A stretch of 64,000 nt of DNA from Paramoeba atlantica (GCA_977017575.1 CDRNVI010000188.1:1-64000); one strand, 5' to 3'; positions 5,124 through 41,578 are shown, numbered from the stretch's first letter. Numbers and translations are program-made. Notes: a model not told the origin generated them from the sequence alone.

Positions 5124-5263
5124 AAAAAAAAAACAAAGAAAATTTTAGAACTCTAAAATTTAGCGTCCACCTTTTTGTTGTTTTTTCCGTTGATCCTCTG
5201 TGATTCCTCTTATCCTCTTGTTTCTTCCTTTTCCTTGATTCCAAAAGATCCGATAGACCAGCG

Positions 5264-6714
5264 ATGGGTGTTGATGAAAAATGGAAAGGGTTTCAAGACC
5301 TTTCTGACCAACTGGAAAAACAACCAACATTCCCTTTCTGTGAAGCGACTTTTTTTTTCTTGGCTTTTCTTTGTTTGTTGCATGCAACACGACACAACTT
5401 GCGTCATGTTGTGGTGTTGGCCGGAGCTTTGATTGGAGGGACTGCCAATGATCTCTTTTTTATGACCTTACCCTTTGTTGATAACTTTTGGCATGCGCAA
5501 GGAACTGTGATGATCACTCCTCGTCTTCCTTTGTATATTCCTTGTGTTTATATTTGTTTTATGTATATTCCGATTGTTTCTTCTTGGCGTTCTCCTCCTC
5601 AACTTCCTCGTTTGGCACGGTTTTGTCTCGCAGGACTCTCTGGCGCTCTCTTTTATTGTATCTTTGATATTACTGGAGCCAAATTTTTATGGTGGACTTG
5701 GCATGATACAGATGCTGGTGTTTTTCATCGGTGGTTAGGAGTTCCTGTTGGAAGTACTCTCTGGACGATTATTCACATCTTTTGTATTTGTTTGATTCTT
5801 TCTTGGTCTGGAATTTGGTTAGATTCGAGTCAAAAGGGAGATAAAAAACCATTGTCGATTCAGAAAGCGATCTTTAGTGTTCTTATGATTGGAATCTTTA
5901 GCACCCCTTTAATGATGCTCACAATGATCCCCTTCCAACTCCACCAAATTCGTTTTGAATTGGAACCATCGTTTCATATTACCCAATTACCTGGAAAGCC
6001 AGATTATATTTCTCTTTGGTTAGCCATCGCTCTCTTCTCTCTGATTGTAATGATGGGGATGATAAACAAGAAACCGAATCCTCGTGAGATTCTCTTTCAT
6101 CCAGGGAGATGGTTAGATGGGATCTTGTTTTTTGGGGTTGTGATCTATTGCGCTGTCATGGCTGGAGTTATGATTTATGGCGATCCTTCAATTGTTGTTG
6201 CTGAGGTGAGAAATTTTAATCTGATCAGTCTCTCTTTTGCTTTTTTTCCTCTTTCTTTTGAATTTTTTTTTCAGCCTTTTATTTTTTTTGGTTCTGATCA
6301 ATTATTTTTATTTCAAAAACGACACCAGGGAGTCCATCAAGAATATGGTGATTGTCGAATTGTTGATTATGATCTGTCAAACTATGCCCGTTTTAAATAT
6401 CTTTGTGCTCAAGACTACAATGAAGACTTTGTTTTTAATTGTGTGGAACAGGTAATTTGATTTTTTTTTCATTTATTTTTCTTTGAAATACCAAAAAAAA
6501 AAATAGATTTTTTTTTAATTAAAATTGTAACTCTCTCTCTCTCTTCTTTCTCCATCAGATTCTCCCACCACACGATCCAGCCTGGTACACTCTTTGCGGA
6601 AAGGCACATACAAACTATCTTCTTTATGCTTGGGTTGTTGCTTCGTTTGCTCTGTGTTGTGTGGGGCTCTATGCACAATTACTTTTCAACCACCCAAAAG
6701 TAAAATCTTCTTGA
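5264..6714 (+). CDS. Uncharacterised multi-pass membrane protein with a WWTWHDTD...GVP motif (DUF7802-like from recollection)
   Basis: Long ORF with many hydrophobic helices and FDITGAKFLWWTWHDTD...WLGVP. Introns at ~6206-6344 and 6452-6558. The last exon reads WYTLCG and ends at TGA 6714. Confidence 0.7.
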
Positions 6715-6745
6715 AAAAGAGAGAGAGTCTCTTCTTTTTCTATTT

Positions 6746-7911
6746 TCACCACGAAAAACTCTCCTCTGTATATTTTTTCTTCCTGAGATAGAAAGTATTT
6801 CCTAAACGATCCCAGATTGTAAGAGTTTGCCCATAATTCACATGGAAGTAATTGTGGTGGTCATCATGGTAGAGACTGCTTGGTTGCCAGGGGAACCAAC
6901 TCTCAAAATATACTCCGGAATGGTCAACGACATTGTGGAAATGGACATACAATAGGTTTACGATGAGGGAAGAAATGTGGGTTGGGATAAAAAATAAACC
7001 TTTCAAGAAAAAGAATGAGGGGAGGGGAAAGGGAAAGAGATCAAAAAGAGGGAAAATGAGAGAGAGAAAAGTTAAAAAAAGAATGGAGAGATAAAAAAAA
7101 AGAAGAAGAAAAAGAGAGATGCATACCAAGAAAAACTCCTCCTTGAACAAATATCATATCAACAGGATGGAGACCTAAACCAGAAAACGCAGTTGGTTGG
7201 CGATAAGCGTGATGAACTTTATGGCACCAAAGATAAAGAAAAGGGATATGAAGAATGCGATGTGAAAAGTATGCCCAAAGATCAATCCAGAGGAACAAAG
7301 AGATTGTTGAAGTGATAACAAAGGGGATAGAAGAAGGGAAATTAAAATCTGTGTAAATTAAGACAACGCCTGGGTGTGTGAAGTAAAGGATTGTGATCAG
7401 AGATGTGAGCACAGCAGCGAGACAGAGATTGCCCACTGCCAAATACACCTTTTTTTTCGAGAAAGATTTTTAAAATATTGTTGAACAAAAATATAAACAA
7501 AAGAGAAAGAAAAAACAAAAAGAAGAAAACCTCAGATCGAGCAAGCGTTTCAACATTATGAGTTTTTTCACCTTGACACCGAAGTTGAGGATGCGCTTGA
7601 TAAAACCGATCAAACCAACGAGCAAAGGGGACAAAAGTGAGAATAGAAAGAACAGCAGTACAAACAGTGCCATAAAGAAAAGTTGCCATTGGATTTGTTT
7701 GTATTTCTTCCGCTGTTGTAATTTGCAAACCACAACAAAGAGAAAGACAAAAAACCGAAGAGGATATCCCAGCCGGCGTACAGAAAAAGGAGACAGCTGC
7801 GAAGATCCCAAAAACGTGGAGCGAACTTTGAAGCGGGTTGGAAAGTTTCAGAACATTATTGTATCCTGCTCTTCTCGCCTTTTCGATTGTTCCAGAAGGG
7901 AGAGAGGGCAT
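6746..7911 (-). CDS. Sterol desaturase / fatty acid hydroxylase superfamily oxidase (ERG3/SC5D-like)
   Basis: Three histidine boxes (HRILH, HKVHH, HDDHH) and NYGQTLTIWDRLGNT, spread over several exons. The start at 7911 is tentative. Confidence 0.85.
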
Positions 7912-8128: not shown

Positions 8129-11100
8129 TCAAGGATTTATCTTTTTTCTTTGATAGAATAAAATATATGCATCTCTTGACACAATCCTCGATTCTTCACA
8201 AGGTGAAACACGAGAATCATCAAAATTGTACCATTTTCCATCAATTGAGGATTTTGCAGAAACTCTAAAATGCCCAGTTTGATGCTTCCCGAGGTGAGTC
8301 ACAACAGCATAGAGATCATACAAAAGTTTTTGTCCTGAAGGATTTCTTATTGTATGATTCGACATATCGAGCTCGTGGATTGGGAATGTGACGAAACTGT
8401 CATTCTTGTCGTACCTGGGAATCAAAGAGTAGGTTTGAGAGGAGTGGGGTTGCCAAAAGAAAAATCCGTTTTAAAGAGATGGATGAAAAATTGACCTTGA
8501 TTTTGTTGGCATTCGATCAAAATGAAAGATGAGCAATTCTGGGCAATGATAGAACTCAACAACCTTTGCTCCTGACACTTTTTGATTGCAGTGGCAGCAA
8601 AAAAATTCACAATCTTTCTCTTGAGTTGCTAACATTGACAAACAGGATTCCAAATCTGAAGTTGGTCGTTGAGAATAGAAACTTGAATCACGATAATCTC
8701 TGGGGTCATCAGTAGATAAATCATAAACAGATCTCAGAACTTGTGGCTTCCATTCTAAAATCAGACAAATGTTCTTTCCCTCTTTGGAATGGGAGAGAAG
8801 AACCGGGTAATCGTCTCCAAGATCGTATAAAGTTTCCCGTTTTTGAGAAATTTGGGGGTTCGTCAGTATCATCTTGAAGAGTGGAGAAGAATAATCTATC
8901 GTGTCTTCTTTTCCCTAGCGAAAGGAAATATTTTTATCATTCAAGGGAAAAAGAAAAACCAAAAAATGTTCAACAAGATACCTCAGTGAAATAAGGAATA
9001 AGTTTTTGAGTTTGTAGAAAGAGTCGTCTTTGAATTGCATGGACCATCTAACCCAAAGAAATGAGATAAAAGGTGGTGAATTCAAAAAAATGAAATCAAG
9101 AACAATTACCTTTTTCTCCAATTGTTTGTAATTGACAGATTTTGAAATGGAACAAATTGTTGGAACCGAAAATAATTGGTTCTGGTCAGTTCTCCATTGG
9201 AAAACACGAATATGCAAGAGATCATCCTCTGGTTCGAAATCTTCTTCTTTCATTTCTTCTTCCTCTTCTGGAATTAAAAAAAAGTCTTTAAATTCGGTCT
9301 TTGTTTTGAAAAAAATCATAACAGAAACCTTCTTTTTTCTTGTTCTTGTTTTGACTTGTCCTTCCTTCAAGCTCAAACACAAAGATATCATCGTCGTTTG
9401 AAATCTCAGTCAAACTCTCTTCCTCAGAAAATTCGTATGTGAATCGGTTTTCCTCAACTTTGGCAACAAACATCGGGTCTTTTGGTATTCCAATTAACTA
9501 AAAAAAATAAGATGAACATTCTTTAAAAAGGAAAAGAAACAAAAGAAACAAAAGAAACAAAAGAAACAAAAGATACATTACTCACAATTTCCTTTAAATC
9601 ACAAATCTTTCCTCCAATTGGGACATCTGCAGAAATTGTAAGCGGAATAAAAGAAGGATCTTTCCAGACAAGAACAAGTCTGATGAGTCTCGTTTTTGAA
9701 ATTGGGATTGGGAGAGAAAGAGATGGTGTTGCGTCGAAGGATGTTGTTGTGAGTTTGCACTTTGAACACTTCCAAGTCGACTTTAATTGGCCCTAGATTG
9801 AATACAATTTTAAAATTTTGAGCAAAGATGATGAGTTATTTTGGAAAGTAAATAAAAAGAGAAAGGAAGCAAACATGAAAAAGGTCAACAATAACTGAGT
9901 CATTGTTCATTAAGTGCTTTTGCCAAGCTTCCTTGGCGAGAATCTGAATTAAAATTCAATTCATCAATCACATAATAAATCATAATAATAAATATAACAA
10001 TAAATAAAATAAAATAAAAATTACTTCTTCAGGAGGTTCATCATTCTTCATAAACGCCTTTTCAGAAACAAATGGCGCCACTCTCGCCTTAACACGATTT
10101 AAATCTTCATGCATTTCATTTAATAAATACAATAAAAATTCATAACAATCATGAAATTGAAAACCACAATATCGTGGCGCAAATTTTGAGAGGAAGTGTT
10201 TGAATTCTCGAGGAGCGAAAGCAGAATATTGTTCTCCCCATAAAAGTTCGAAAAGTTGTGAAATTTGGATTGGTAAAGTTCCGTTCGTTCCGAGTGGATT
10301 TGTGGGATTGATCTCTTGTCTTGGGGAAAAATGAATCAGTTTTTGAAAAACAAAGGACAAAAAAGAGAAAATAAAAAGAAAGAGAAAGGGAGAAAGAATT
10401 TAAAAAAAAAAGAAAAGAAAAAAAGAAAAGAAAAAAACAAACTCAAAAGTTTTGGACAAGATATAATCTCTCAGGGGAGTTGTTTGACTGAGAGATTGGA
10501 TTGCACTATTTAAAAAACAAGTATTTCCCATATTTCTTAAACCACACAATCCTGGAGGAGTTGGTTCTTTTCCACCCCCCCTATTTTTAAAGGAAAAAGA
10601 AAGAGATTTAGAGAAGAATTTCTCTTGTGTTTGAGAGAAAAGAGAGAGAGAGGGAGAGATGAAAAGAAAAGAAAAAGAACCACGGAGAGTATCCATATTC
10701 GTTCGTCTCTTCCCTAAACAATAAAAACATTTAATAAATCTCTTTTTTTCTTCCAAAAAATAAAAGAGAAAAGAAAGAAAAGAAAAAGAGAAAGGAAAAA
10801 GAGAAAAGAGAAGAGAAAAGAAAAGAAAGAATGAAAAGAAAGAAAAAACCTTCTGAAAGTGAAATTTCCTTCAAAATTTCTTTCTTCAATCATGATCTTT
10901 TGTCGATCGACCAGTCCAGATTGGGAGATCTCTCTTTCCATTTGGGTCAATAATTTTCTGCTGTTGAGAGAACGAGAAAAGAAATGCAAGAGAGAAAAGA
11001 GATGAGAAGGGAGAGAAGGGAGAAAGAGAGAGAAAGGAGAGAGAGAGAGGAAAAAGAAAGAAGAAAGAAAGAAGAAAGAAAGAAAGAAAGAAATAATTAA

Positions 11101-14100
11101 ATAAATAAATAAATAAAAAGCAAACCAAACATCTCCAAAATAGTTCCAAAGTCGAAAATCATTTTCCTTTATCCCAAAAACTTGAACAACTTTATTTCTT
11201 ATATCAATAATTCTATCTTTTTTTGAAAGAGTTTGAAATGAGGGTTTCTAAAAGGCAGGAATCAACGCGATTTTTTTTTTTTTTGCAAAACTCTGGGCCC
11301 AGAATTTTTGCTGAGGGTGAAAACCCAGAGTTTTTTTATTTTAAAAAAAAATTCAAATAATTTCAAAAAAAATAAATTTTTTATTTTGACTAAAAAAACA
11401 AAAATAAAGATGAAGAGAATTCAAAATTTTGAATTGATGAATGTCACTTGAGAGATCTTCATAACCATCATTTTCTTCTGCAGAACAAATGGGAAAAGGT
11501 GATAGAATCTTGTTTCGAAGAGGACAAAGAGGAGAAAGTTGGATTCTATGGTTCATCAGAGAATAAACAATTAACAGAACAATAGTTTGCATCCGCACTT
11601 GAAGAAAAAGAGACAGTGGTTGCCTGAAAAGTGTGCACCAACCCCAAAAACATCTCAATCAATCCTCAAATTCACTGTCTGGCGATCATCCTTTCAAACA
11701 CAAAGCAAAAAACAAAAAACAAAACAAAAAATAAAACAAAAAAACACAAAAGCAAACACACACAAACAAAAGAAAAACACACAAACAAAAACAAAACAAA
11801 AGAGAAAGCAAAAAAAACAATTAAACAAAAGAACAAACAAACAAAAGCAAACACACAAACAAAAGCAAACACACAAACAAAAACAAAACAAAAGAGAAAC
11901 CAAAAAAAAAACAATCAAACAAAAGAACAAACAAACAAAAACAAAACAAAAACCGAAAGAACGAACCGAACAGAAAAAACGAAAAAGAACGCGCTCCTCA
12001 CCAAAGTAAGGTACCAAGTCTTTTCATTTTTTTCTTTTGAAAGAAAGACAGCAAGAAAAAAATCATAATATTTTTATGTGACAGAGCCTCGTTTTTTTTT
12101 GCTTTTTCTGTTCACGTTCCCCTTCTTGGTTTTCTTCTTTTTTTTTTCCTGGTTGGTTTGTTTTTTTTTGTTTTTAGTTGAATGAATTGTTATTTTATGA
12201 CTCTCTTGGGGGTTGTGAAGTTTCTGCTTTTGAGGTTTCTTTTTTTTCAATTTCTCCCCTCTCTCTCCCTTTCTCTCTTTTCCTTTCTTTTCAAACTGAA
12301 ACACCTTTTTAGAAAATCAAAAAGATGTCCTCAAAATGGAAGAAACTGGAGAAGGCAACCTGTGTTGAGGTAATATGTCCCAGCCAAGAGGTAATATGTC
12401 CAATCAAGAGGTAATATGTCCCAGCCAAGAGGTTTTTACATTTCTTTGAATGTTTTCTTTCCATCTTATGAATGAGCAGCAAAATGCAACTGAGTGTGGA
12501 ATTTTTTTATTAGCTTTTTGCTATTGTTTGCCTTTGAGATTCCACTCAAAAGTTTTTGTTTAAAACATGCACCATTCTTAGAAGGAAGATATTTGTGGAG
12601 TTGATAACACAAAAGATTATTCCACCATAAACCTCCCTCCGATTCAATTTCAGCAACCTCTTCATTTCCATTTTTCTCTTTTTTTTGTTTGAAATAAACT
12701 TTCAATTTTCCATTTCAATCTCATTTTCAAAATTTTGAATTTTTTTTTCAAAACGAAAAAACTCTGGGTTTTCACCCTCAGCAAAAATTCTGGGCCCAGA
12801 GTTTTGTGAAAAAAAAACATCAAACAAAAAAACTAGTTTTTTCGGGAGTTTTAGAAACCCTCAATGCCTTATTTTTTGGAAAAAAAGAAAAATTAGACAA
12901 TAATCTCTCTGAATTCTTTCTCTCTTTCTCTCTTTCTTTCTCTCTTTCTTTCTCTCTTTCTCTCTTTCTTTTCTCTCATTTTTCTCTCCTCGCCCCCTTT
13001 CTTCTCTTTCTCCCTCTCTCTCTCCAAAAAAGAAATACAAACTTCAGAAAAATCAGAAGATCGAACCAAACAAAATTTCAAAGGTCGAACTTCAACTTCC
13101 AATAAACCAGGACCATCTTGAATCACTTTTCGAGAGATTTCAGGCCCTCCTCCATACCTAAAATCATCTTTGTTTTGAGAAAAGAAAGAGAGGGAAGAGA
13201 GAGGGAATTGTGTATCTTTTCTCTTGTAAATGTAAGAAGAAGAAGAGATCTTTTTCTCTTCTCTTTTTCTTTTCTCTTTCTTGAAAAGAAAATGAAAACC
13301 ATAAGTGAAGGAGTTTCCATTGTTTTTCATGGAGTAAATGTCGATCACGTACATACCTTTTAAGGGAGAAAGAATGAGAGGAAAGGAGACAGGAAAAGAG
13401 AGAGAAGAAAGAAGAAAAGAAGAAAGAGGGGGAGAAAGAGAATACGGAGAACAAAAAAGAGAGAGAAGAGAGAGAGAAGAAAGAGAGAGAAAGGAACTCT
13501 GAAACATCTCCTTGTAAAGTGAGAAAAGAAGAGTTATCAATTTGTTTTGGAGGAGTGTTCAAATTATGATAATGATAAAAATCCAATCGATTTCTTGGTT
13601 CTTTGTACTTTGAATTGATATTATAGACATGAAAGGGGAGAGAGAGAGAGGGATAGGGGAGAGAGAGAAAAGGAAAGATTGTGAGGGAAAGAGAGAGAGT
13701 TAGAGAGGAAGGAAAGAAAAGATAGAAAGAAGAGAAAGGAGAGAAAAGAGAAAGAGAAAAAGAGAAAAACTCCAGTAAATTGCTTCCAGTGTTTCCACCA
13801 AAGAGAAGAAATCAAATACCAATCGTCTCCTTCTCTCTTCTCACTTTGGGAATGGAGATAAAAGAAAGCTTTTCTTTGTTCTTCTTTTGATGGCAATTCC
13901 TGTCAGAAAGAAGAAGAAGGAAAATTTTAGAAAAGAGAGGATAGAGAGAGAGAGGGAAAGGAGAAAAAGGGAGAGAACTGTTAAAATCCGGTTGTGGCAC
14001 TTCCCTATTTGTCCAATGATGATCCACTCATTTCCGCATCTTTCCCACGTCATCCTTTTGCCCTCATTTCGGTCTCTTCCTTATCCTCCTGGTCCCTTCC

Positions 14101-17100
14101 ATTGTTTTCCGTGTTCCTCAATTCGGTCCATTTCTCCACGGGTTATTATTTCCCCATGCGGGTTCACAATCTCATCTTTGGCACTATTTGCTGACGTGCC
14201 TGTGACTCCCTTGTGTGACTCCGATGACGTATTGTTGTGTGACACCCGTGACTATTGTTTTGTAAATAAATCACAATTTAATTTCCATACACAATTTGTG
14301 TTTATCAGATTAAGAGTCCTATATACTCTACCGATTTATTTTTGTGCTGCTACTATGTCTTCCCTGAAGCTTAAAGAGAAACAACACCTCTCCTCCAACA
14401 ACTATGACGAATGGTGTGTTGCGATGCTTGTCCTGTTTGACACCATCAATGGAAGAAAGTATGTTACTTCCCTCCATGAGGATCTCACTCCTGAGCAACG
14501 GATTGTTTCTGCCCAGGTCGCTGCTGCCATCTACTGCAATGTGGATGCCGAAAACAAGAAAGTTCTTGCGCCCTCCATTGCCTCTCAGGAAGCTTGCAAC
14601 CCCCACATTCTCTGGGACTTATTGCAGAAGAAGCACAACCCCCCAACCACTTCTAACCGCCACAACTTGAAGGCCGGCTTCTACTCCACCCAGCTTGATG
14701 ACACGGAGTCGACCGACCAATTTCTCACCCGTCTCAAGGCATCTGCTGATAAAGCTAATGCCATCACTGAGAAGCATCTTCGCCAGATGCGTGAAGCACA
14801 GGCTCAAGAACTGCGGTTTGCTTTTCCTCCTCCCTCATCGTCGTCAAAATCCTCCTCATCCTCTGGTCTTGGTTCCACTACTGGAAGTGACTTTACTCTT
14901 CACTCTTCCCTGGGCTCAACCGCCTTCAAGTCGAAGAAGAAGATTACTCAAGAAGACATCAAGGAGATACTGATTGACATTCTGGTCAATCATCTGGATC
15001 TTGCGAAGCCGATTTTGGAGACGTTTGGATTTGTTGGCGCTGGTTTGATCGTGGAAGATGACATGTTGTCGGTCCTCCTCACTTCCATTCACCACCGCTA
15101 TGAAGCTGTATACAATTATCTGGTTGGACAAAGTCATTTGACTTTCCCTGAAGCTCAGAACCATGTTATGGAGCATGCTTCCGATACATTTGAGTCGAAC
15201 GATCAACTCTTTGCGAATCGATCCTCACACGGAAAAAGAAGAAAAAGACAAAAAGGCGGTTCCAAATTAGGAAATTCCACCTTAACACCAACGCGTCAAC
15301 ACTTTTTCAAATTCGCGAAATGGCCATTTCAAAAGCAAAAAAATTAAAAAATAGGGACCATTTAAAAATTTCAAAGGCCGAAAATAAAAATTCGGACCCC
15401 CGAAAAAGAGATTTCGGAACCGCTTTTTTTGCTTTTTTTCTGTTTTCGTGAAATTTTTTTCCCCAATTTTCTGAAATTTTTCTGGAGGTGATGGGCCAAA
15501 AGAAGTGGGCTCATCGGGTTGTGAAACACCGGGAAGGATCAAAGATCGGTCGGATTGAGTCCTGGTTGGTACAAAATCGACAAATGGGAGGACCAACAGC
15601 ATTGTCGATCTGCCTCTCTGCTGTGTTTGGTGAGCCTGTCTCAAAGCAAGAAGTTTGGTGTGCACTGACGAACCTTCGATGGACCAAAAAACTAAAATCA
15701 CCTGTTGTTGGGTTTTCAATATTAAGTGAGCGACAGATCTATCTCCGTGTCCTGAAATCTTTGTGGTGTTGTGATGGGGCAATTGTTTTTGTGGATGAAA
15801 AAAAATTTAAAAAAAAAGAGATCGAGTCAATGCTGAATTATGGTTATGGACCTGTCAATGAGCGTCTTCCAACTCAGTTAAGGATATTTTTTTTTCTTGT
15901 GGTTGTATATTCTGAAATCTCCTCATCAGAGGGGGAATCCAGCATCATTTCTTGTTTTCCTGACATTTGGAAATTAATTTGTGACACCAAAGACAATCCA
16001 AACTTGAGGGGCAACACGTATTGCCATTTTGCCAAAATGAAATGTTTTCAATCGAATTGAATTTTTTTGAAATTGAAATTTTTCAATTGCCAGAAAAAGC
16101 AAAATTGAATTTTTTGAGATTGGATTTGAAATCAGGTTTCAAGGGTTCCGAAAAGTTGTTTTCAAAATTTCAGAGCTCTTTGAAAATTGAAAAAGTGTTG
16201 ACGCGTTGACGTTCTTTTTCACGTTCTCCTTCTGGTTCTTCTGGCTCCTCTGGCTTTGGCTCTGGCTCTGGTTCCGGTTCTGGCCCGAGTACTGGTCCTG
16301 GTCGTTTCGATTCAGGCCGTCCCAACCAACAACAATGCACCAATGGTCAGCGCAGATCTAACCAATCTCGCTCTCGCAATCCCTCCTCCTCTGGTTCCTC
16401 CAATCACCTGGGTTCTCAATCCCATTGTTTCCTTTTCTCTGGTGAGTCCCCCACATCAAATGAGTTGAACTTTATTGTTGATAGCGGATGCACAAGACAT
16501 ATTGTTGGTGCGAATCTATTACATGCTGTACATGATGAACATTCTGTTCGTCCCCGAACGATCTGTCTGCTTGACAACAAAAGATACACCTCTACACGTG
16601 CTGCAAAGATTACTTTTACCTCCACCGGTACTAAACATCAAGTAACACTGTTGGATGTAACAATTATCCCCAAGGTGTCCGAGTCGTTCATTTCTGTGAG
16701 CCAGCTGGCCCAGAAAGATGTATCCACATGTTTTATGAAGACTGGATGTCAACTGTATTACAATGATGAGTTGATAGCAATTGGTACGAAAGTTCAAAAC
16801 CTCTACCGCATCAATATCAGTTTTCCGGATGGTCGGCTCCTTGCGGATCAGTCCCCTGCTCTTTCTTCTTCTTCTTCTTCCTCTTCATCATCTTCTTCCT
16901 CTTGGCTTTCCACCTCTTACTCTCGCCCTCGCTCTTCTCGATTTTCTTCAATCATGGATCTGCATCGTTCCTTGGGTCATGCTAACCCTCGTCAACTGAT
17001 ATATGCCATGGAGAGTGATTCTATCCAGGGAGTTTCCCTAAATGATATTGAACGGGTGATCGAAAAATGTGATGCTTGTGCCCAGGCGAAAATGAAAACT

Positions 17101-20100
17101 CTCAAGAAGAATGGATCAAAACCCTCATCTGCTACTTACCCAATGGAATCACTTCAAACTGATTATGCTGGTCCTTTTTCTCCTACTCTTGCTGGTCACA
17201 GAGGTTTCCAAGCCACAATTGATGTCTGCTCTCGACGTGTTTTCTCTGACTTGTCCAAGACTCGAACTGAGAATTCTGACAATCTTGCTGATCTTGTGGT
17301 TGCTGGTGAGAATTTCACCGGAAATTCTGTGAGAACGATCCGTACTGATGGTGCTCGTGAGTACACCCACACCTTCAAGAAGTTTGCTGTGAAGAAAGGT
17401 ATCCAACTCCAACACTCCTCCCCTCACTGTCAATCCCAAAATGGTCTTGCGGAGCGAGCAATCGGAAAAATCTTGGATTCTTCTACTGCTATGTTGATTG
17501 AGTCGGGTCTTGCGCGTGGTTACTGGGGTTTTGCTGTAAAATACAGTACATTGATTTTGAACTGTACACCAACTGCTGCTCTTAATGGACGCACCCCACA
17601 TGAACAATGGTACGGTTGCCCTCCCAATGTTGATGTTCATCACCCATTTGGTTGTTTGGCTTATCGAAAGGTTCCAAAGAAGCAACACAAGAAGTTCCAA
17701 CCCAAAGGTGAGCGTTGTATTTTTCTTGGTATCCCTGATGGATATGCTGGCTATCTTATTCTCCGTCTCCGTGATAATAGACTCCTGGTCTCTCGAGATG
17801 TTCAGTTTAATGACAAAGTCTTCCCCAAACAGCATGACAAAACCCTTGAGCTTGATGGTGATGATGAAGGATATGATGCTTCTTTCCTTACGAGTGGTCA
17901 CAACAAGACACCTGCTGCCTTGGACGCTGTTGATTCCGATGAGAGTTCTGATGAAGACAATGAAAACCCATTCATTCCTCCTATGCCTGCCCCTAATCCT
18001 GTTGTGCAACCCAGTCCTCCTCCTGCTTTGAGGAATCCCTTTATGAATCCAAGCCCTCACTTGTCTCCTGATTCTTTGATGCCACTCACTCCCCACACAC
18101 CGATCTCAACCCCACCTGGTTTTCCTATTGGCCCAGCGTTAAATCAACCTAATGTTGCCCCTTCTCCTCATGTGTCTGCACCTCCTGGCCACACCCCAAG
18201 ATTGAGTGCCTTTGATCGATCTGTTCAAGAGTTGAAAGAGAATCCAAGGAGAAGAAGAGCTTTTGAAGCTAGTGGAAAAGCAAACCTAATTGTGGATGCC
18301 ACTGAGTCTGAAGATGTGGATTATCTTTATGTTCAACAAGTCTTGGATGACGCCCCAACTTCTTTTCGAGCTGCTGTGTCTGGTCCCAATGCTGAGAAGT
18401 GGATGGAAGCAATACAAAAAGAATTTGACGCCCTCACAAAGAATGGAACCTGGACGCTTGTCCCAATCCAAAGTCTACCTGCTGGTACCAAAGTACACCA
18501 ACCAATTTGGAGGTTTAGAAAGAAGCTTGATGGTCGATTTAAAGCACGGCTCTGTTTTGATGGTCGCCGCCAAATCCCTGGTATTGATGTGTTTGAAAGT
18601 TCCTCTCAAGTTCCCTCTCTCGAATCGGTTCGAGCGGTTATTACTGCCATGATACAACATGCTTCTCGTGTCGTACAACTTGATGTTTTAAATGCTTTTC
18701 TACACTCCACTGTGGATGTTGATATTTACATGAGACAACCTGCTGGTTTCTGCACCAATCCCAACCTTGTATGTAAATTGAACAAAGCGTTGTATGGTCT
18801 TGTGCAGTCCCCTCTTCTGTGGCAACAAGAGATCCATAGTACCCTAACAATTATGGATTTTCTGCAATCAGCATATTCAAACTGCATCTACTTCTACCGC
18901 TCTGGGGATACCTGGTGCTTGCTCATTGTCTATGTGGACGACATTTTGGTCGCTTCGAATAACACTTCATTTATTGACTCAGTTATTGGTTTTTTAAACA
19001 AGAGATACGGTGTTCGAGTAATTGAAGGAATCGATTTATACCTTGGAATCAAATGTGCATTTGATTCTGGTGCCAAGACAGTCCGCATGACCCAACCACA
19101 TGTTATTGAGAAACTTATTGAGCTCCTACAAACCCAATCCTTGAAGCCTGTGCCAACTCCTGCAAATCCAAATCACATTTTGGCCCGTGAAGGAGGCGAT
19201 CGTGTTGATATTACCAACTACCGCTCTGCAATTGGTACTTTGTTGTGGCTTGCACGCTGTACTCGCCCCGACATCCTGTTTCAAGTAATCCTCTTGTCCC
19301 AATTTCAAAAAGATCCTCGCATTGAGCACTGGGGAGCCATCAAGCATCTGGTTCGATATTTGATGGGCACTCTCAACCTTGGTATCACAGTTAATCGAGA
19401 TAATGACTCCTCCTTTACCATGATGACGGACTCAAGTTTCGGTGATATCCAATTGGATCGCAAGTCTGCTTCTGGCTGTGTTGTTTTCTTGAGTGGAACT
19501 CCGGTGGTTTTCTCCTCCAACAAACAGAAGTGCACTGCAACAAGCTCTGCAGAGGCTGAATATATTGCGTTGAGTGATGGAATGAAAAAGCTGATGTGGA
19601 TTATCAATCTTGTGAATGAGTTGAATACCCTTGGTTTTAACTATCCTCCTGTTCCCACTGTTTTCACTGACTCACAACCTGTGATTGCCTTGGTCAAGAA
19701 GAATGATCCTGAGAACTCTCGTCTACGCCACATTGATATTCACTGCCATTGGATTCTGGAATTTTTCCACTCTGGTCGCACTCACATTGATTACATCAAA
19801 ACGGACTACAACATTGCGGATATTCTGACCAAATCGTTCAAGTCAAGTGGGAGGTTTAAATGGCTAAGAAGTTTTATTGCTGATTGAGTTAATTTTTTTT
19901 CTGCTGATGATTCGTGGTGATCAGTCATTGCGGGGGTGTGTTAAAATCCGGTTGTGGCACTTCCCTATTTGTCCAATGATGATCCACTCATTTCCGCATC
20001 TTTCCCACGTCATCCTTTTGCCCTCATTTCGGTCTCTCCCTTATCCTCCTGGTCCCTTCCATTGTTTTCCGTGTTCCTCAATTCGGTCCATTTCTCCGCG

Positions 20101-20362
20101 GGTTATTATTTCCCCATGCGGGTTCACAATCTCATCTTTGGCACTATTTGCTGACGTGCCTGTGACTCCCTTGTGTGACTCCGATGACGTATTGTTGTGT
20201 GACACCCGTGACTATTGTTTTGTAAATAAATCACAATTTAATTTCCATACACAATTTGTGTTTATCAAGAACGTCAATGAGAGAAGAATCTTCACTCCCG
20301 CTCTCTCTCTCTTCTCCACTTTCGTTCTCTTCTTCTTCTTCTTTCTCAGGTCCAGAAAACAT
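8129..20362 (-). CDS. Ubiquitin-specific protease, USP4/11/15 type (DUSP-UBL-catalytic), carrying three transposon insertions
   Basis: DUSP ([35 protein letters not shown]), UBL ([30 protein letters not shown]), Cys box [18 protein letters not shown] and His box LYAVVTHLG...GHF...WYNFDDSRV. Exon 20362-20273 joins 13899 in phase 0 across the Copia element. Confidence 0.92.
11240..12862. mobile_element. Non-autonomous TIR DNA transposon (1623 bp) with 14-bp TIRs, 51-bp subterminal inverted repeats and a 3-bp AAT TSD
   Basis: GAGGGTTTCTAAAA (11240-11253) and TTTTAGAAACCCTC (12849-12862) are perfect inverted repeats. Subterminal IRs lie at 11286-11336 and 12756-12806. AAT occurs at 11237-11239 and 12863-12865. 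Removing the element restores the USP exon AFQTLSKKD. No transposase was recognised. Confidence 0.9.
12367..12428 (+). repeat. Three tandem 20-21-bp repeats (GAGGTAATATGTCCCAGCCAA) inside the TIR element
   Basis: Units at 12367-12387, 12388-12407 (variant) and 12408-12428, followed by a partial GAGGT. Confidence 0.9.
13979..14307 (+). repeat. 5' LTR
   Basis: TGTTAAAATCC...TTTATCA. Differs from the 3' LTR at 2 of 329 positions (14078 vs 20038, 14138 vs 20098). Confidence 0.97.
14308..14319 (+). promoter_or_regulatory. Primer-binding site complementary to the tRNA-Lys(CUU) anticodon stem-loop
   Basis: GATTAAGAGTCC lies directly after the LTR. Its reverse complement GGA-CT-CTT-AA-TC corresponds to tRNA-Lys(CUU) positions 29-40. 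Confidence 0.75.
14355..15347 (+). CDS. gag: Copia gag, interrupted at 15289 by a nested DNA transposon and reading into it to TAA
   Basis: NYDEWCVAM and LWDLLQKKH (Copia gag motifs). The frame rejoins pol at 16210 when the insert and one AC copy are removed. Confidence 0.85.
   Translation: MSSLKLKEKQHLSSNNYDEWCVAMLVLFDTINGRKYVTSLHEDLTPEQRIVSAQVAAAIYCNVDAENKKVLAPSIASQEACNPHILWDLLQKKHNPPTTSNRHNLKAGFYSTQLDDTESTDQFLTRLKASADKANAITEKHLRQMREAQAQELRFAFPPPSSSSKSSSSSGLGSTTGSDFTLHSSLGSTAFKSKKKITQEDIKEILIDILVNHLDLAKPILETFGFVGAGLIVEDDMLSVLLTSIHHRYEAVYNYLVGQSHLTFPEAQNHVMEHASDTFESNDQLFANRSSHGKRRKRQKGGSKLGNSTLTPTRQHFFKFAKWPFQKQKN
15289..16208 (+). mobile_element. Defective IS630/Tc1-mariner-like DNA transposon (920 bp) nested in Copia gag
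   Basis: Perfect 22-bp TIRs, CAACGCGTCAACACTTTTTCAA (15289-15310) and its reverse complement (16187-16208), flanked by AC at 15287-15288 and 16209-16210. Confidence 0.9.
15491..16060 (+). pseudogene. Truncated IS630/Tc1-like transposase
   Basis: HTH-like [26 protein letters not shown], then R-x-x-Y...IVFVDE (first catalytic Asp) and YGYG. No second Asp (DN-x-x-x-H) or catalytic Glu is visible. Confidence 0.65.
16210..19887 (+). CDS. pol: Copia pol region: end of gag, protease, integrase, reverse transcriptase, RNase H
   Basis: Open frame from 16210. Contains [10 protein letters not shown] (PR), HRSLGH...CDAC plus TDYAG/TDGAREY/NGLAER (IN), YVDD (RT) and TDSSF/EAEY/ADILTK (RNase H). Confidence 0.97.
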   Translation, partial: RSFSRSPSGSSGSSGFGSGSGSGSGPSTGPGRFDSGRPNQQQCTNGQRRSNQSRSRNPSSSGSSNHLGSQSHCFLFSGESPTSNELNFIVDSGCTRHIVGANLLHAVHDEHSVRPRTICLLDNKRYTSTRAAKITFTSTGTKHQVTLLDVTIIPKVSESFISVSQLAQKDVSTCFMKTGCQLYYNDELIAIGTKVQNLYRINISFPDGRLLADQSPALSSSSSSSSSSSSSWLSTSYSRPRSSRFSSIMDLHRSLGHANPRQLIYAMESDSIQGVSLNDIERVIEKCDACAQAKMKTLKKNGSKPSSATYPMESLQTDYAGPFSPTLAGHRGFQATIDVCSRRVFSDLSKTRTENSDNLADLVVAGENFTGNSVRTIRTDGAREYTHTFKKFAVKKGIQLQHSSPHCQSQNGLAERAIGKILDSSTAMLIESGLARGYWGFAVKYSTLILNCTPTAALNGRTPHEQWYGCPPNVDVHHPFGCLAYRKVPKKQHKKFQPKGERCIFLGIPDGYAGYLILRLRDNRLLVSRDVQFNDKVFPKQHDKTLELDGDDEGYDASFLTSGHNKTPAALDAVDSDESSDEDNENPFIPPMPAPNPVVQPSPPPALRNPFMNPSPHLSPDSLMPLTPHTPISTPPGFPIGPALNQPNVAPSPHVSAPPGHTPRLSAFDRSVQELKENPRRRRAFEASGKANLIVDATESEDVDYLYVQQVLDDAPTSFRAAVSGPNAEKWMEAIQKEFDALTKNGTWTLVPIQSLPAGTKVHQPIWRFRKKLDGRFKARLCFDGRRQIPGIDVFESSSQVPSLESVRAVITAMIQHASRVVQLDVLNAFLHSTVDVDIYMRQPAGFCTNPNLVCKLNKALYGLVQSPLLWQQEIHSTLTIMDFLQSAYSNCIYFYRSGDTWCLLIVYVDDILVASNNTSFIDSVIGFLNKRYGVRVIEGIDLYLGIKCAFDSGAKTVRMTQPHVIEKLIELLQTQSLKPVPTPANPNHILAREGGDRVDITNYRSAIGTLLWLARCTRPDILFQVILLSQFQKDPRIEHWGAIKHLVRYLMGTLNLGITVNRDNDSSFTMMTDSSFGDIQLDRKSASGCVVFLSGTPVVFSSNKQKCTATSSAEAEYIALSDGMKKLMWIINLVNELNTLGFNYPPVPTVFTDSQPVIALVKKNDPENSRLRHIDIHCHWILEFFHSGRTHIDYIKTDYNIADILTKSFKSSGRFKWLRSFIAD
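19928..19938 (+). promoter_or_regulatory. Polypurine tract
   Basis: TTGCGGGGGTG immediately before the 3' LTR, the typical Copia PPT position. Confidence 0.75.
19939..20267 (+). repeat. 3' LTR
   Basis: Direct repeat of 13979-14307. Confidence 0.97.
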
Positions 20363-26815: not shown

Positions 26816-27875
26816 CCAATCGAAGTAGTAAACAGCTTCACAAGGAACCTCAAAAAAAATTCTCTCCCAAGGATCCAACGAAAGCTGAAAATAAAAAAAA
26901 AATTCAATTAAAAAAAAAAACGGTTTTAAATTGGGCGAAACCGGGAATCGAACCCGGGCCTCTCGCACCCGAAGCAAGAATTTTACCACTTAACTATTTC
27001 GCCAAATTACGAAATATTCGGTAAAAATAGCCCATTCAAAAAGTCGGGTGGGGTGGGGAAAGTCATTGTTGAGAGGAAGAGGAGAAGAGGAGAAGAGGAG
27101 AGAACCTGTAATCTCTTTTGTCCCAAGTTTACGAAAGGGGTGGCCAATCGACAAAATACAAAAGGAGAAAGGGATCTTTTTTCCCATTGCTCGTTTGTAA
27201 ACCACTCACTGTTGAGAAAAAGGATTGGAAAAAAGAAAAAGAAAGTATTTTCAGTGAAAGGGGAAACAAGAATACCGATAAGGGGGAGGAAGGGCTCCAA
27301 TCTCCACTGCAACCAAGGTAATATTTTGTCCAAACTCCGTATGAAGATCTTCTACAACTCGAGCAATTTCTTCTTGTATTTTCTCGCTTGAATATTTGAG
27401 TAAATTCCAACGAACAATCTTCTTTTGGAGAGTCGAACACAACAAAACCCCATTTTCGCTTTCAGCTTCCTTTTCTCTCTTTTTTGAAAATGAAACTAAA
27501 GATTTTTTCAAAAAATCAGAAGGAGATGTCCCAACAAAAAGATTACAAGGATCAATTTGATGTGTCCCCAAATATTCAAGAAAATCGCATGACATTCCCT
27601 CTAGAAGTTCTTTTCCACGAAAAGTTTTTGTTTCGAGAATTTCGAGATAATTTTCAACCAATTTCTGTTTCATTGCTTTAATTTCAAAAGAGAGAAAAAA
27701 AAATTAGAAATTGTTTTCGTTTCTAAAAACCTGAAGATTTGTGGTGTGTAAAGGAGAGAATGTCGCGGATCGAAATTGTCCAATTTTATTGAGAATTTCT
27801 GCACAATATCTACTTGCCCATTCTCTTTTCCCTAATTTAAAGAAGAAATTAAAATTAATTGAAAAAAAAACAAAG

Positions 27876-40959: not shown

Positions 40960-41032
40960 AGTCCAATAGCTCAGTCGGAAGAGTGCCTGCTTAACACGCA
41001 GGAGGTACCCGGATCGAAACCGGGTTGGACTA
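40960..41032 (+). tRNA. tRNA-Val(AAC), copy 1
   Basis: AGTCCAA/TTGGACT acceptor stem, CCTGC-TTAACAC-GCAGG anticodon arm, CCCGG-ATCGAAA-CCGGG T arm, A73, followed by a T-run. Confidence 0.93.
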
Positions 41033-41170
41033 ATTTTTTCCTTTTTTTTCTCCCTCCCTTTTGGTTTGTCATTTTTGAGCTGGGAAAAGAATTGTTGAAT
41101 TTTCTGTCAAAGATTTTCCATTTTGAGTTTTATTTTCTATTTTTTTTTCGTTCTTTGAGCTCATTTCTGA

Positions 41171-41496
41171 AACTTTGTGAACGAAAGAATTCTTTTTCTG
41201 TCCAACTGAAGGTCACCCAAAACTCAGCATTGTTATTTCGGAAAAGTCCAATAGCTCAGTCGGAAGAGTGCCTGCTTAACACGCAGGAGGTACCCGGATC
41301 GAAACCGGGTTGGACTATTTTTTTTCTCCTTCCCTTTGTGGTGGGAAAAGAATTATTGTTGGATTTTCTGTCAAAGATTTTCCATTTTTTTTGAGTTTTA
41401 TTTTTCTTTTTTTTCTTTGAGCTCATTTCTTGAACTTTGTGAACAAAAAATTCTTTTTCTGTCCAACTGAAGGTCACCCAAAACTCAGCATTATCA
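41171..41496 (-). pseudogene. Two internally deleted duplicates of the DOT1 last exon (41171-41231 and 41429-41496) between the tRNA-Val genes
   Basis: AACTTTGTG...TCTGTCCAACTGAA...AAACTCAGCATT matches 41707-41822. The second remnant reads FSWTEKEFFVHKVQ versus FSWTDKELNFYVHKVQ in the intact exon. Confidence 0.75.
41245..41317 (+). tRNA. tRNA-Val(AAC), copy 2
   Basis: Identical 73 nt to copy 1. Confidence 0.93.
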
Positions 41497-41505
41497 TTTC
41501 GTAAA

Positions 41506-41578
41506 AGTCCAATAGCTCAGTCGGAAGAGTGCCTGCTTAACACGCAGGAGGTACCCGGATCGAAACCGGGTTGGACTA
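41506..41578 (+). tRNA. tRNA-Val(AAC), copy 3
   Basis: Identical 73 nt to copy 1. Confidence 0.93.

Follow-up and report, generated by a model that had tools for sequence, protein, structure and literature searches.

A young non-autonomous transposon with splice-site-like ends in the UBL exon of a DUSP-UBL-USP gene

Among the closest described systems are the dSpm and Ds elements of maize, in which element-terminal splice sites, or a donor of the gene paired with an acceptor in the terminal inverted repeat (TIR), excise most of the element from the transcript and leave few nucleotides behind. The maize dSpm and Ds exon insertions that are spliced out in this way reportedly include the alleles bz-m13, wx-m9 and adh1-Fm335; a review of such insertions is that of Purugganan and Wessler (1992, Genetica 86:295). 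In Caenorhabditis elegans, the Tc1 transposon is reported to be removed from mutant pre-mRNAs by cryptic splicing (Rushforth and Anderson, 1996). Introners are found in Micromonas, Aureococcus, Polarella, Symbiodinium and others, and recruit their splice sites in diverse ways, from the element, from the duplication or from the exon (Gozashti et al., 2022, PMC9860276; Roy et al., preprint 10.1101/2020.10.14.339549). Splice sites that are borne by transposons permit “safe integration”, and further related cases are provided by the MITE-derived non-canonical introns of Fritillaria borealis and the non-conventional introns of euglenids (review PMC11282704).

The element under study is located in a 64-kb window, the whole stretch of DNA that was analyzed, where it spans positions 11240-12862 (1623 bp) within a coding exon of a DUSP-UBL-USP gene that is read from the minus strand. 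The ends of the element form a TIR pair that is identical at 14 of 14 positions (11240-11253 and 12849-12862), and the two copies of an ATT target-site duplication are located at 12863-12865 and 11237-11239 on the minus strand. On this strand the sequence across the insertion reads aataag/GCATT/GAGGGTTTCTAAAA...TTTTAGAAACCCTC/ATT/TCAAAC, and the exon continues after the 3′ duplication as ATT/TCAAACTC. On the host strand, the 5′ TIR (GAGGGTTTCTAAAA, 12849-12862) includes a candidate donor GT at 12858-12857. The 3′ TIR (TTTTAGAAACCCTC, 11240-11253) includes a candidate acceptor AG at 11249-11248 that is preceded by TTGATTCCTGCCTTTTAG. A preliminary description of this DNA had proposed, for either strand, a GT at positions 5-6 of the TIR and an AG located 8 nt before the end, and the sites indeed are present; their two-strand symmetry follows from the TIR being an inverted repeat. 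Further inward are two subterminal inverted-repeat arms of 94 nt each, one at 12724-12817 that contains the palindrome TCTGGGCCCAGA and a TIR-like GAGGGT motif, and its partner at 11275-11368 with which it is predicted to pair in the pre-mRNA. The two arms share an identical core of ~60 nt that includes the palindrome and the GAGGGT motif, and a 40-nt piece of the core matches both exactly. The interior comprises an (ACAA)n-type microsatellite plus a 94-bp tandem repeat (11696-11952) and a 21-bp tandem repeat with 3.2 copies (12367-12433), and no credible open reading frame was found within the 1623 bp. The element is a non-autonomous class II cut-and-paste transposon, with the TIR and a fixed 3-bp duplication observed at five loci. 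The recurrence of the same ends in four further copies elsewhere shows that it is a genuine mobile element, as opposed to a fortuitous repeat. The perfect 14-bp TIR, the ATT duplication and these additional copies bear out the earlier proposal that the interval 11237-12867 represents a transposon in a coding exon.

The additional copies were found by way of a spurious 101-amino acid internal reading frame of the element that identified three “proteins” in the ENA assembly ERZ24900291, and of a cluster member that identified a fourth. The copies occupy L003 3747-5352 and L004 2888-4505, each with the target duplication AAT, L005 3903-5436 with AAT/ATT, and L007 4854-6452 with ATT. In a multiple alignment, L003-L005 are 92-94% identical to the window copy, and L007 is ~90% identical to it by BLAST, for a range of 89-94% overall. 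The family is represented by five full-length, near-identical copies, a feature that it shares with introners, and internal blocks such as window 12512-12478 are identical in four copies. A 41-amino acid spurious reading frame of the subterminal repeat retrieved no candidates when used as a probe for copies, and neither the subterminal motif nor a block conserved in four copies was matched in metagenome, genome or viral contig collections. The family probably is PIF/Harbinger-like. The 3-bp duplication, the short G-rich TIR with GTTT and the lack of a transposase resemble those of non-autonomous PIF/Harbinger elements, whereas the duplication is A[A/T]T here and usually TWA there. No autonomous partner with this TIR was found, no DDE_Tnp_4 transposase was linked to the family TIRs, and no copy contained a reading frame with family matches. 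A DDE_Tnp_4 (Harbinger-type) reading frame is located at L007 3182-3613, ~1.2 kb from the L007 copy and outside its TIRs, with no second flanking TIR; it may be part of another element or a candidate relative of the autonomous partner.

The conservation of the termini bears on a reading in which the GT and AG of the TIR evolved for the splicing of exonic insertions, as in an introner family that operates in two orientations with a 15-nt in-frame scar, such that the USP gene harbors a newborn intron. This reading is improbable. It draws on the occurrence of GT and AG in the TIR on both strands with a footprint of 4+8+3 nt, on T-rich tracts before the AG in both orientations, and on the either-orientation introners documented in Aureococcus and Polarella. 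Furthermore, the GT at TIR positions 5-6 is kept at 10 of the 10 termini, the CT that forms the opposite-strand AG at nine of the 10, and the pyrimidine tract ATTCCTNCCTTTTAG before the AG in all five copies. Binding of the transposase would in any case be expected to keep the TIR conserved. Against the reading, none of the four other copies resides in recognizable coding sequence: no coding-like frame spans the reconstructed empty sites of the L003, L004, L005 and L007 copies, the gene calls that flank them yielded no Pfam matches, and reverse-transcriptase, integrase and gag fragments nearby mark the surroundings as transposon-rich non-coding DNA. The sampled copies thus are not introns in many unrelated genes; a single one among five, the window copy, is genic. 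One of the outcomes that the preliminary description had named as speaking against its proposal was that the other copies all be intergenic and lack the dinucleotides; half of this was observed, as the copies are non-genic but the dinucleotides are retained. Within the 64-kb window, no other copy was detected by the TIR, the subterminal motif or a relaxed TIR, and no splice scar of the family was found. In addition, a duplication that ends in T would produce TGA in the scar in one-third of the reading phases. The broader corollary, that donor and acceptor sites within the palindromic 14-bp TIR would let any exonic insertion be spliced on either strand, with a constant footprint of 12 nt in addition to the 3-bp duplication, and that the USP intron has been caught at birth in an intron-rich protist, likewise is assigned little probability. 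An exonic excess in the window genome may still exist, as the sample consists of five copies of which four derive from ERZ24900291, an assembly of uncertain relation to that genome.

The host gene (8132-20362, minus strand) was assembled from reading frames and GT-AG pairs, and comprises 15 exons and 827 codons with a GNTCF Cys box and a GHF His box. Exon-wise Pfam searches returned DUSP (E=0.012) and Ubiquitin_3 in both the interrupted exon (E=0.079) and the next exon (E=4e-4), matches that the shortness of the exon pieces keeps below the Pfam cut-off, as well as UCH matches with E=4e-10 and 4e-20. The combination of DUSP, a Ubiquitin_3 UBL and UCH with Cys and His boxes is that of USP4/11/15-type genes. 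The exon for the end of DUSP and the initial strand of the UBL can be aligned to the structures 4MEM and 4MEL of USP11 DUSP-UBL; the gene model places it at 13157-13043 on the minus strand, which corrects the 13170-13043 given initially. It is followed on the same strand by a natural intron of 175 nt (12868-13042, GTTTGT...AATAAG) and then by the interrupted UBL exon with the Pfam Ubiquitin_3 match, the first 5 nt of which are at 12867-12863 and the remainder at 11126-11236. A homologue in ERZ24900291, L001, is collinear with the window USP over residues 31-823 and possesses an intron at the position identical to that of the natural intron. The exon that follows in L001 (TVHLFSKRD...) shows a gap-free alignment with the pre-insertion sequence (AFQTLSKKD..., with the junction SE/AFQTLSKKD) and is devoid of the extra residues. 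The intron position and the gap-free exon establish that the element is in coding sequence, 5 nt past a conserved 3′ splice site, which upholds the initial placement of the insertion 5 nt inside the USP UBL exon with the acceptor at 12867. The junction of an element-free allele would read ...TCTGAAGCATTTCAAAC..., and the alignment with USP11 suggests that the insertion point falls in the turn that connects strands one and two of the UBL.

ERZ24900291 contains two or more additional genes of the DUSP-UBL-USP type (L001 6452-11025 and L002 925-1284), which are 44-48% identical to the window gene. The L002 sequence ends before the UBL exon. Assignment of L001 as the orthologue was rejected, as its flanking genes are not shared with the window; it is termed a homologue here and may be a paralogue of the window USP gene. 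L001 and L002 suggest a small paralogous family that could buffer the loss of one copy. The window gene contains 14 predicted cis-introns with donors mostly of the GTTT type. Such a number disagrees with a kinetoplastid origin, as the kinetoplastids described to date possess no more than three genes with introns (PMC11613528), and the host is treated here as a marine, intron-rich protist that was sequenced in MMETSP. A tandem GTTTCTTTT repeat that begins at an exon end (9540-9576, minus strand) offers successive in-frame donor candidates that are equivalent to one another (VSF VSF VSF). A Copia-type LTR retrotransposon (13979-20267, 6.3 kb) is located 5 nt inside intron 1 of the gene; its 329-bp LTRs are identical at 327 positions, it includes a 1140-amino acid pol reading frame, and its duplication AGAAC (13974-13978 and 20268-20272) is a repeat of the donor GTTCT. 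The USP gene accordingly contains two young transposon insertions, each no more than 5 nt from a splice junction.

Retention of the element in the mRNA would introduce a stop at codon 183, 16 codons into the element and before the catalytic domain. By contrast, two routes of removal that had been put forward in the preliminary description, the joining of the TIR GT (12858) to the TIR AG (11248) and the joining of the natural donor at 13042 straight to the TIR AG, each gave an open frame when computed. The former would generate a coding sequence of 2496 nt (...SEALRKPSFQ...) with the predicted 4+8+3 = 15 extra nt compared to the original, and the latter a coding sequence of 2487 nt (...SEKPSFQ...) with 6 extra nt. 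The 827-codon frame otherwise is open, which agrees with the earlier statement that the rest of the gene looks intact. A third in-frame donor is present at 12825. Of the acceptors within the element, that of the TIR alone keeps the frame open downstream, since the TAG to which it belongs is followed by no further in-frame stop. Skipping of the exon was rejected as a means of rescue, as loss of the 116-nt exon results in a frameshift. TIR-to-TIR splicing would need either a 9-nt micro-exon or sequential splicing, and the intron that is removed would be 1611 nt in length versus 61-269 nt for the 13 modeled introns of the USP gene, from which intron 1 with its Copia insertion was excluded. If spliced, removal of the element would be imprecise in the manner of dSpm and not clean.

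The strength of the candidate sites was assessed with a small weight matrix, and natural donors were scored by leave-one-out. The donors of the 13 modeled introns consist mostly of GTTT and then T-rich sequence. The TIR donor scored 7.1 bits compared to -0.4 to 9.5 bits (median 6.5) for natural donors, at the 93rd percentile among all GTs in the window, and the host-strand TIR acceptor scored 1.7 bits compared to a natural median of ~2, at the 87.5th percentile. Thus, the GT and AG of the TIR are plausible but not distinctive and resemble average host splice sites. These values also weigh against an origin of the TIR sites in selection for splicing in two orientations: the opposite-strand acceptor attained just -2.8 bits, and dozens of GT and AG sites within the T-rich element equal or surpass the TIR sites, with ~28 GTs and ~15 AGs that scored above them in a first-pass scoring. 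In the predicted minimum-free-energy fold of the pre-mRNA, a long helix of 127 pairs forms between the two end regions. The helix is predicted to bring the GT and AG adjacent to each other, as splicing in either orientation might exploit, yet both sites would be buried in the TIR stem.

The MMETSP transcript Ga0186503_104530 (JGI 3300017035) corresponds to the neighboring DUF7802 gene (window 5199-6946, L006), with which it aligns in three blocks, two that are 100% identical and a third that matches at 389/391 positions. Two introns are removed from this transcript, 6207-6326 with the donor GTGAGA and 6452-6555 with the donor GTAATT; as these verified donors differ from each other and from GTTT, the host consensus is loose. 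The window also includes five tRNA genes, at 40960-41578, 26933-27003 and 297-368, three of which form a regularly spaced array with identical scores. The match to the DUF7802 gene indicates that the transcriptome of this strain is public. A search with a 131-amino acid exon query found no same-strain USP peptide among representatives of ~15 billion proteins, in which the best relatives were 44-48% identical, even though the transcript of the neighboring gene is represented there at 100% identity. The last 31 nt of the upstream USP exon had no match in metagenome contigs, a collection that perhaps does not include the transcriptome of the strain. The missing transcript points weakly to a low abundance of USP mRNA, and may reflect only low expression or incomplete assembly.

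The age of the insertion was gauged from private substitutions in the 1464 columns that are aligned over four copies, of which the window copy has 13, L004 16, L005 33 and L003 56. C>T or G>A changes account for 49 of the 56 private substitutions in L003 and 23 of the 33 in L005, a bias that suggests deamination-type or RIP-like decay of repeats in that organism. The window copy is young, with <1% private changes, as is apparent from these few substitutions, the perfect TIRs and duplication, and the ~60-nt core that is identical in both arms. A neutral coding sequence of 2481 nt at a divergence of ≤0.9% would be free of stops with a computed probability of 0.3-0.75. The intact coding sequence was therefore rejected as a sign of selection after insertion, and the intact gene provides no evidence of rescue since the copy is too young and a stop-free frame is expected often under neutrality. 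Equally, the USP gene could be recently dead.

The youth of the copy thus accommodates a second alternative, namely that the insertion is a plain null allele that kills this gene copy, with a truncated or degraded transcript, and persists because it is recent, heterozygous or covered by a paralogue. This outcome is rather unlikely overall, although clearly less so than an introner family that evolved for splicing. It is in keeping with the stop 16 codons into the retained element, with the young Copia insertion in the same gene, with the two or more additional DUSP-UBL-USP genes in the related assembly, with the failure to find the USP peptide from the transcriptome of the strain, and with the demands of the TIR-to-TIR splice in terms of a micro-exon and an unusually long intron. 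It is countered by the cryptic splicing of exon-inserted transposons that is said to be common in other organisms, such as for Ds/dSpm in maize and Tc1 in C. elegans, by the reasonable acceptor that coincides exactly with the last in-frame stop, and by the open remainder of the coding sequence, albeit that this is a low-power test.

We favor the interpretation that this is a young non-autonomous TIR copy in a USP exon, and that the splice-like layout probably is a by-product and not an adaptation of the family. The transposon entered the UBL exon at an ATT that is located 5 nt past a 3′ splice site, and brought with it a GT and AG that form part of its conserved terminal sequence and that resemble the loose, T-rich splice sites of the host. 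At this position two in-frame removal routes exist on paper, from either the TIR GT or the natural donor to the TIR AG, and the layout then would derive from the TIR sequence together with the landing place. Leaky in-frame splicing of some USP transcripts is plausible, with the chances for and against about evenly balanced, and would place the locus beside the exon insertions of dSpm/Ds in maize and Tc1 in C. elegans as a natural parallel. A by-product origin has to contend with the observation that one motif, GTTTCT, gives both a donor-like GT and, on the opposite strand, an AG behind a pyrimidine tract; a TIR of random sequence would be somewhat unlikely to combine this double role with the kept tract and a footprint divisible by three. 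Nevertheless, the proposal in the preliminary description that the family hides from selection by splicing in either orientation is unsupported, as the four other copies are non-coding, the TIR sites are ordinary and the window copy is too young.

Compared to described systems, the locus resembles the dSpm and Ds insertions of maize, which also involve a non-autonomous TIR element in a coding exon near an intron and a product that sometimes is in frame. Those cases are backed by transcript and phenotype evidence, whereas the present one is known from sequence alone, in another host and another transposon family. As with Tc1 in C. elegans, imprecise splicing at or near the transposon ends could restore partial gene function, but Tc1 belongs to a different superfamily with a TA duplication and its removal has been demonstrated experimentally. 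Introners likewise include DNA-transposon types with a TIR and target-site duplication in which the element may carry splice sites, and some of their families act in either orientation. Unlike the family described here, they occur in many nearly identical copies, which themselves are spliced as introns of unrelated genes and normally leave the coding sequence unchanged; in this family one of five copies is genic, splicing is a prediction, and 6 or 15 extra nt would be left. The introns of Fritillaria and euglenids also are bounded by TIRs and target-site duplications with ends joined by base-pairing, as predicted here, but are characterized by non-canonical junctions and large numbers, in contrast to the GT-AG sites of a single candidate. 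As the evidence stands, the insertion is an ordinary young one that probably is damaging and has splice-site-like ends, and it adds nothing on intron origin beyond the maize, nematode and introner studies. Should transcripts demonstrate that the element is removed in frame, the locus would constitute a fresh natural example of the conversion of an exonic transposon to a tolerated intron-like sequence, undescribed in this protist lineage. Terminal-site splicing of exon-inserted transposons and introners that function in two orientations already are known, and the USP insertion is a candidate for a further case.
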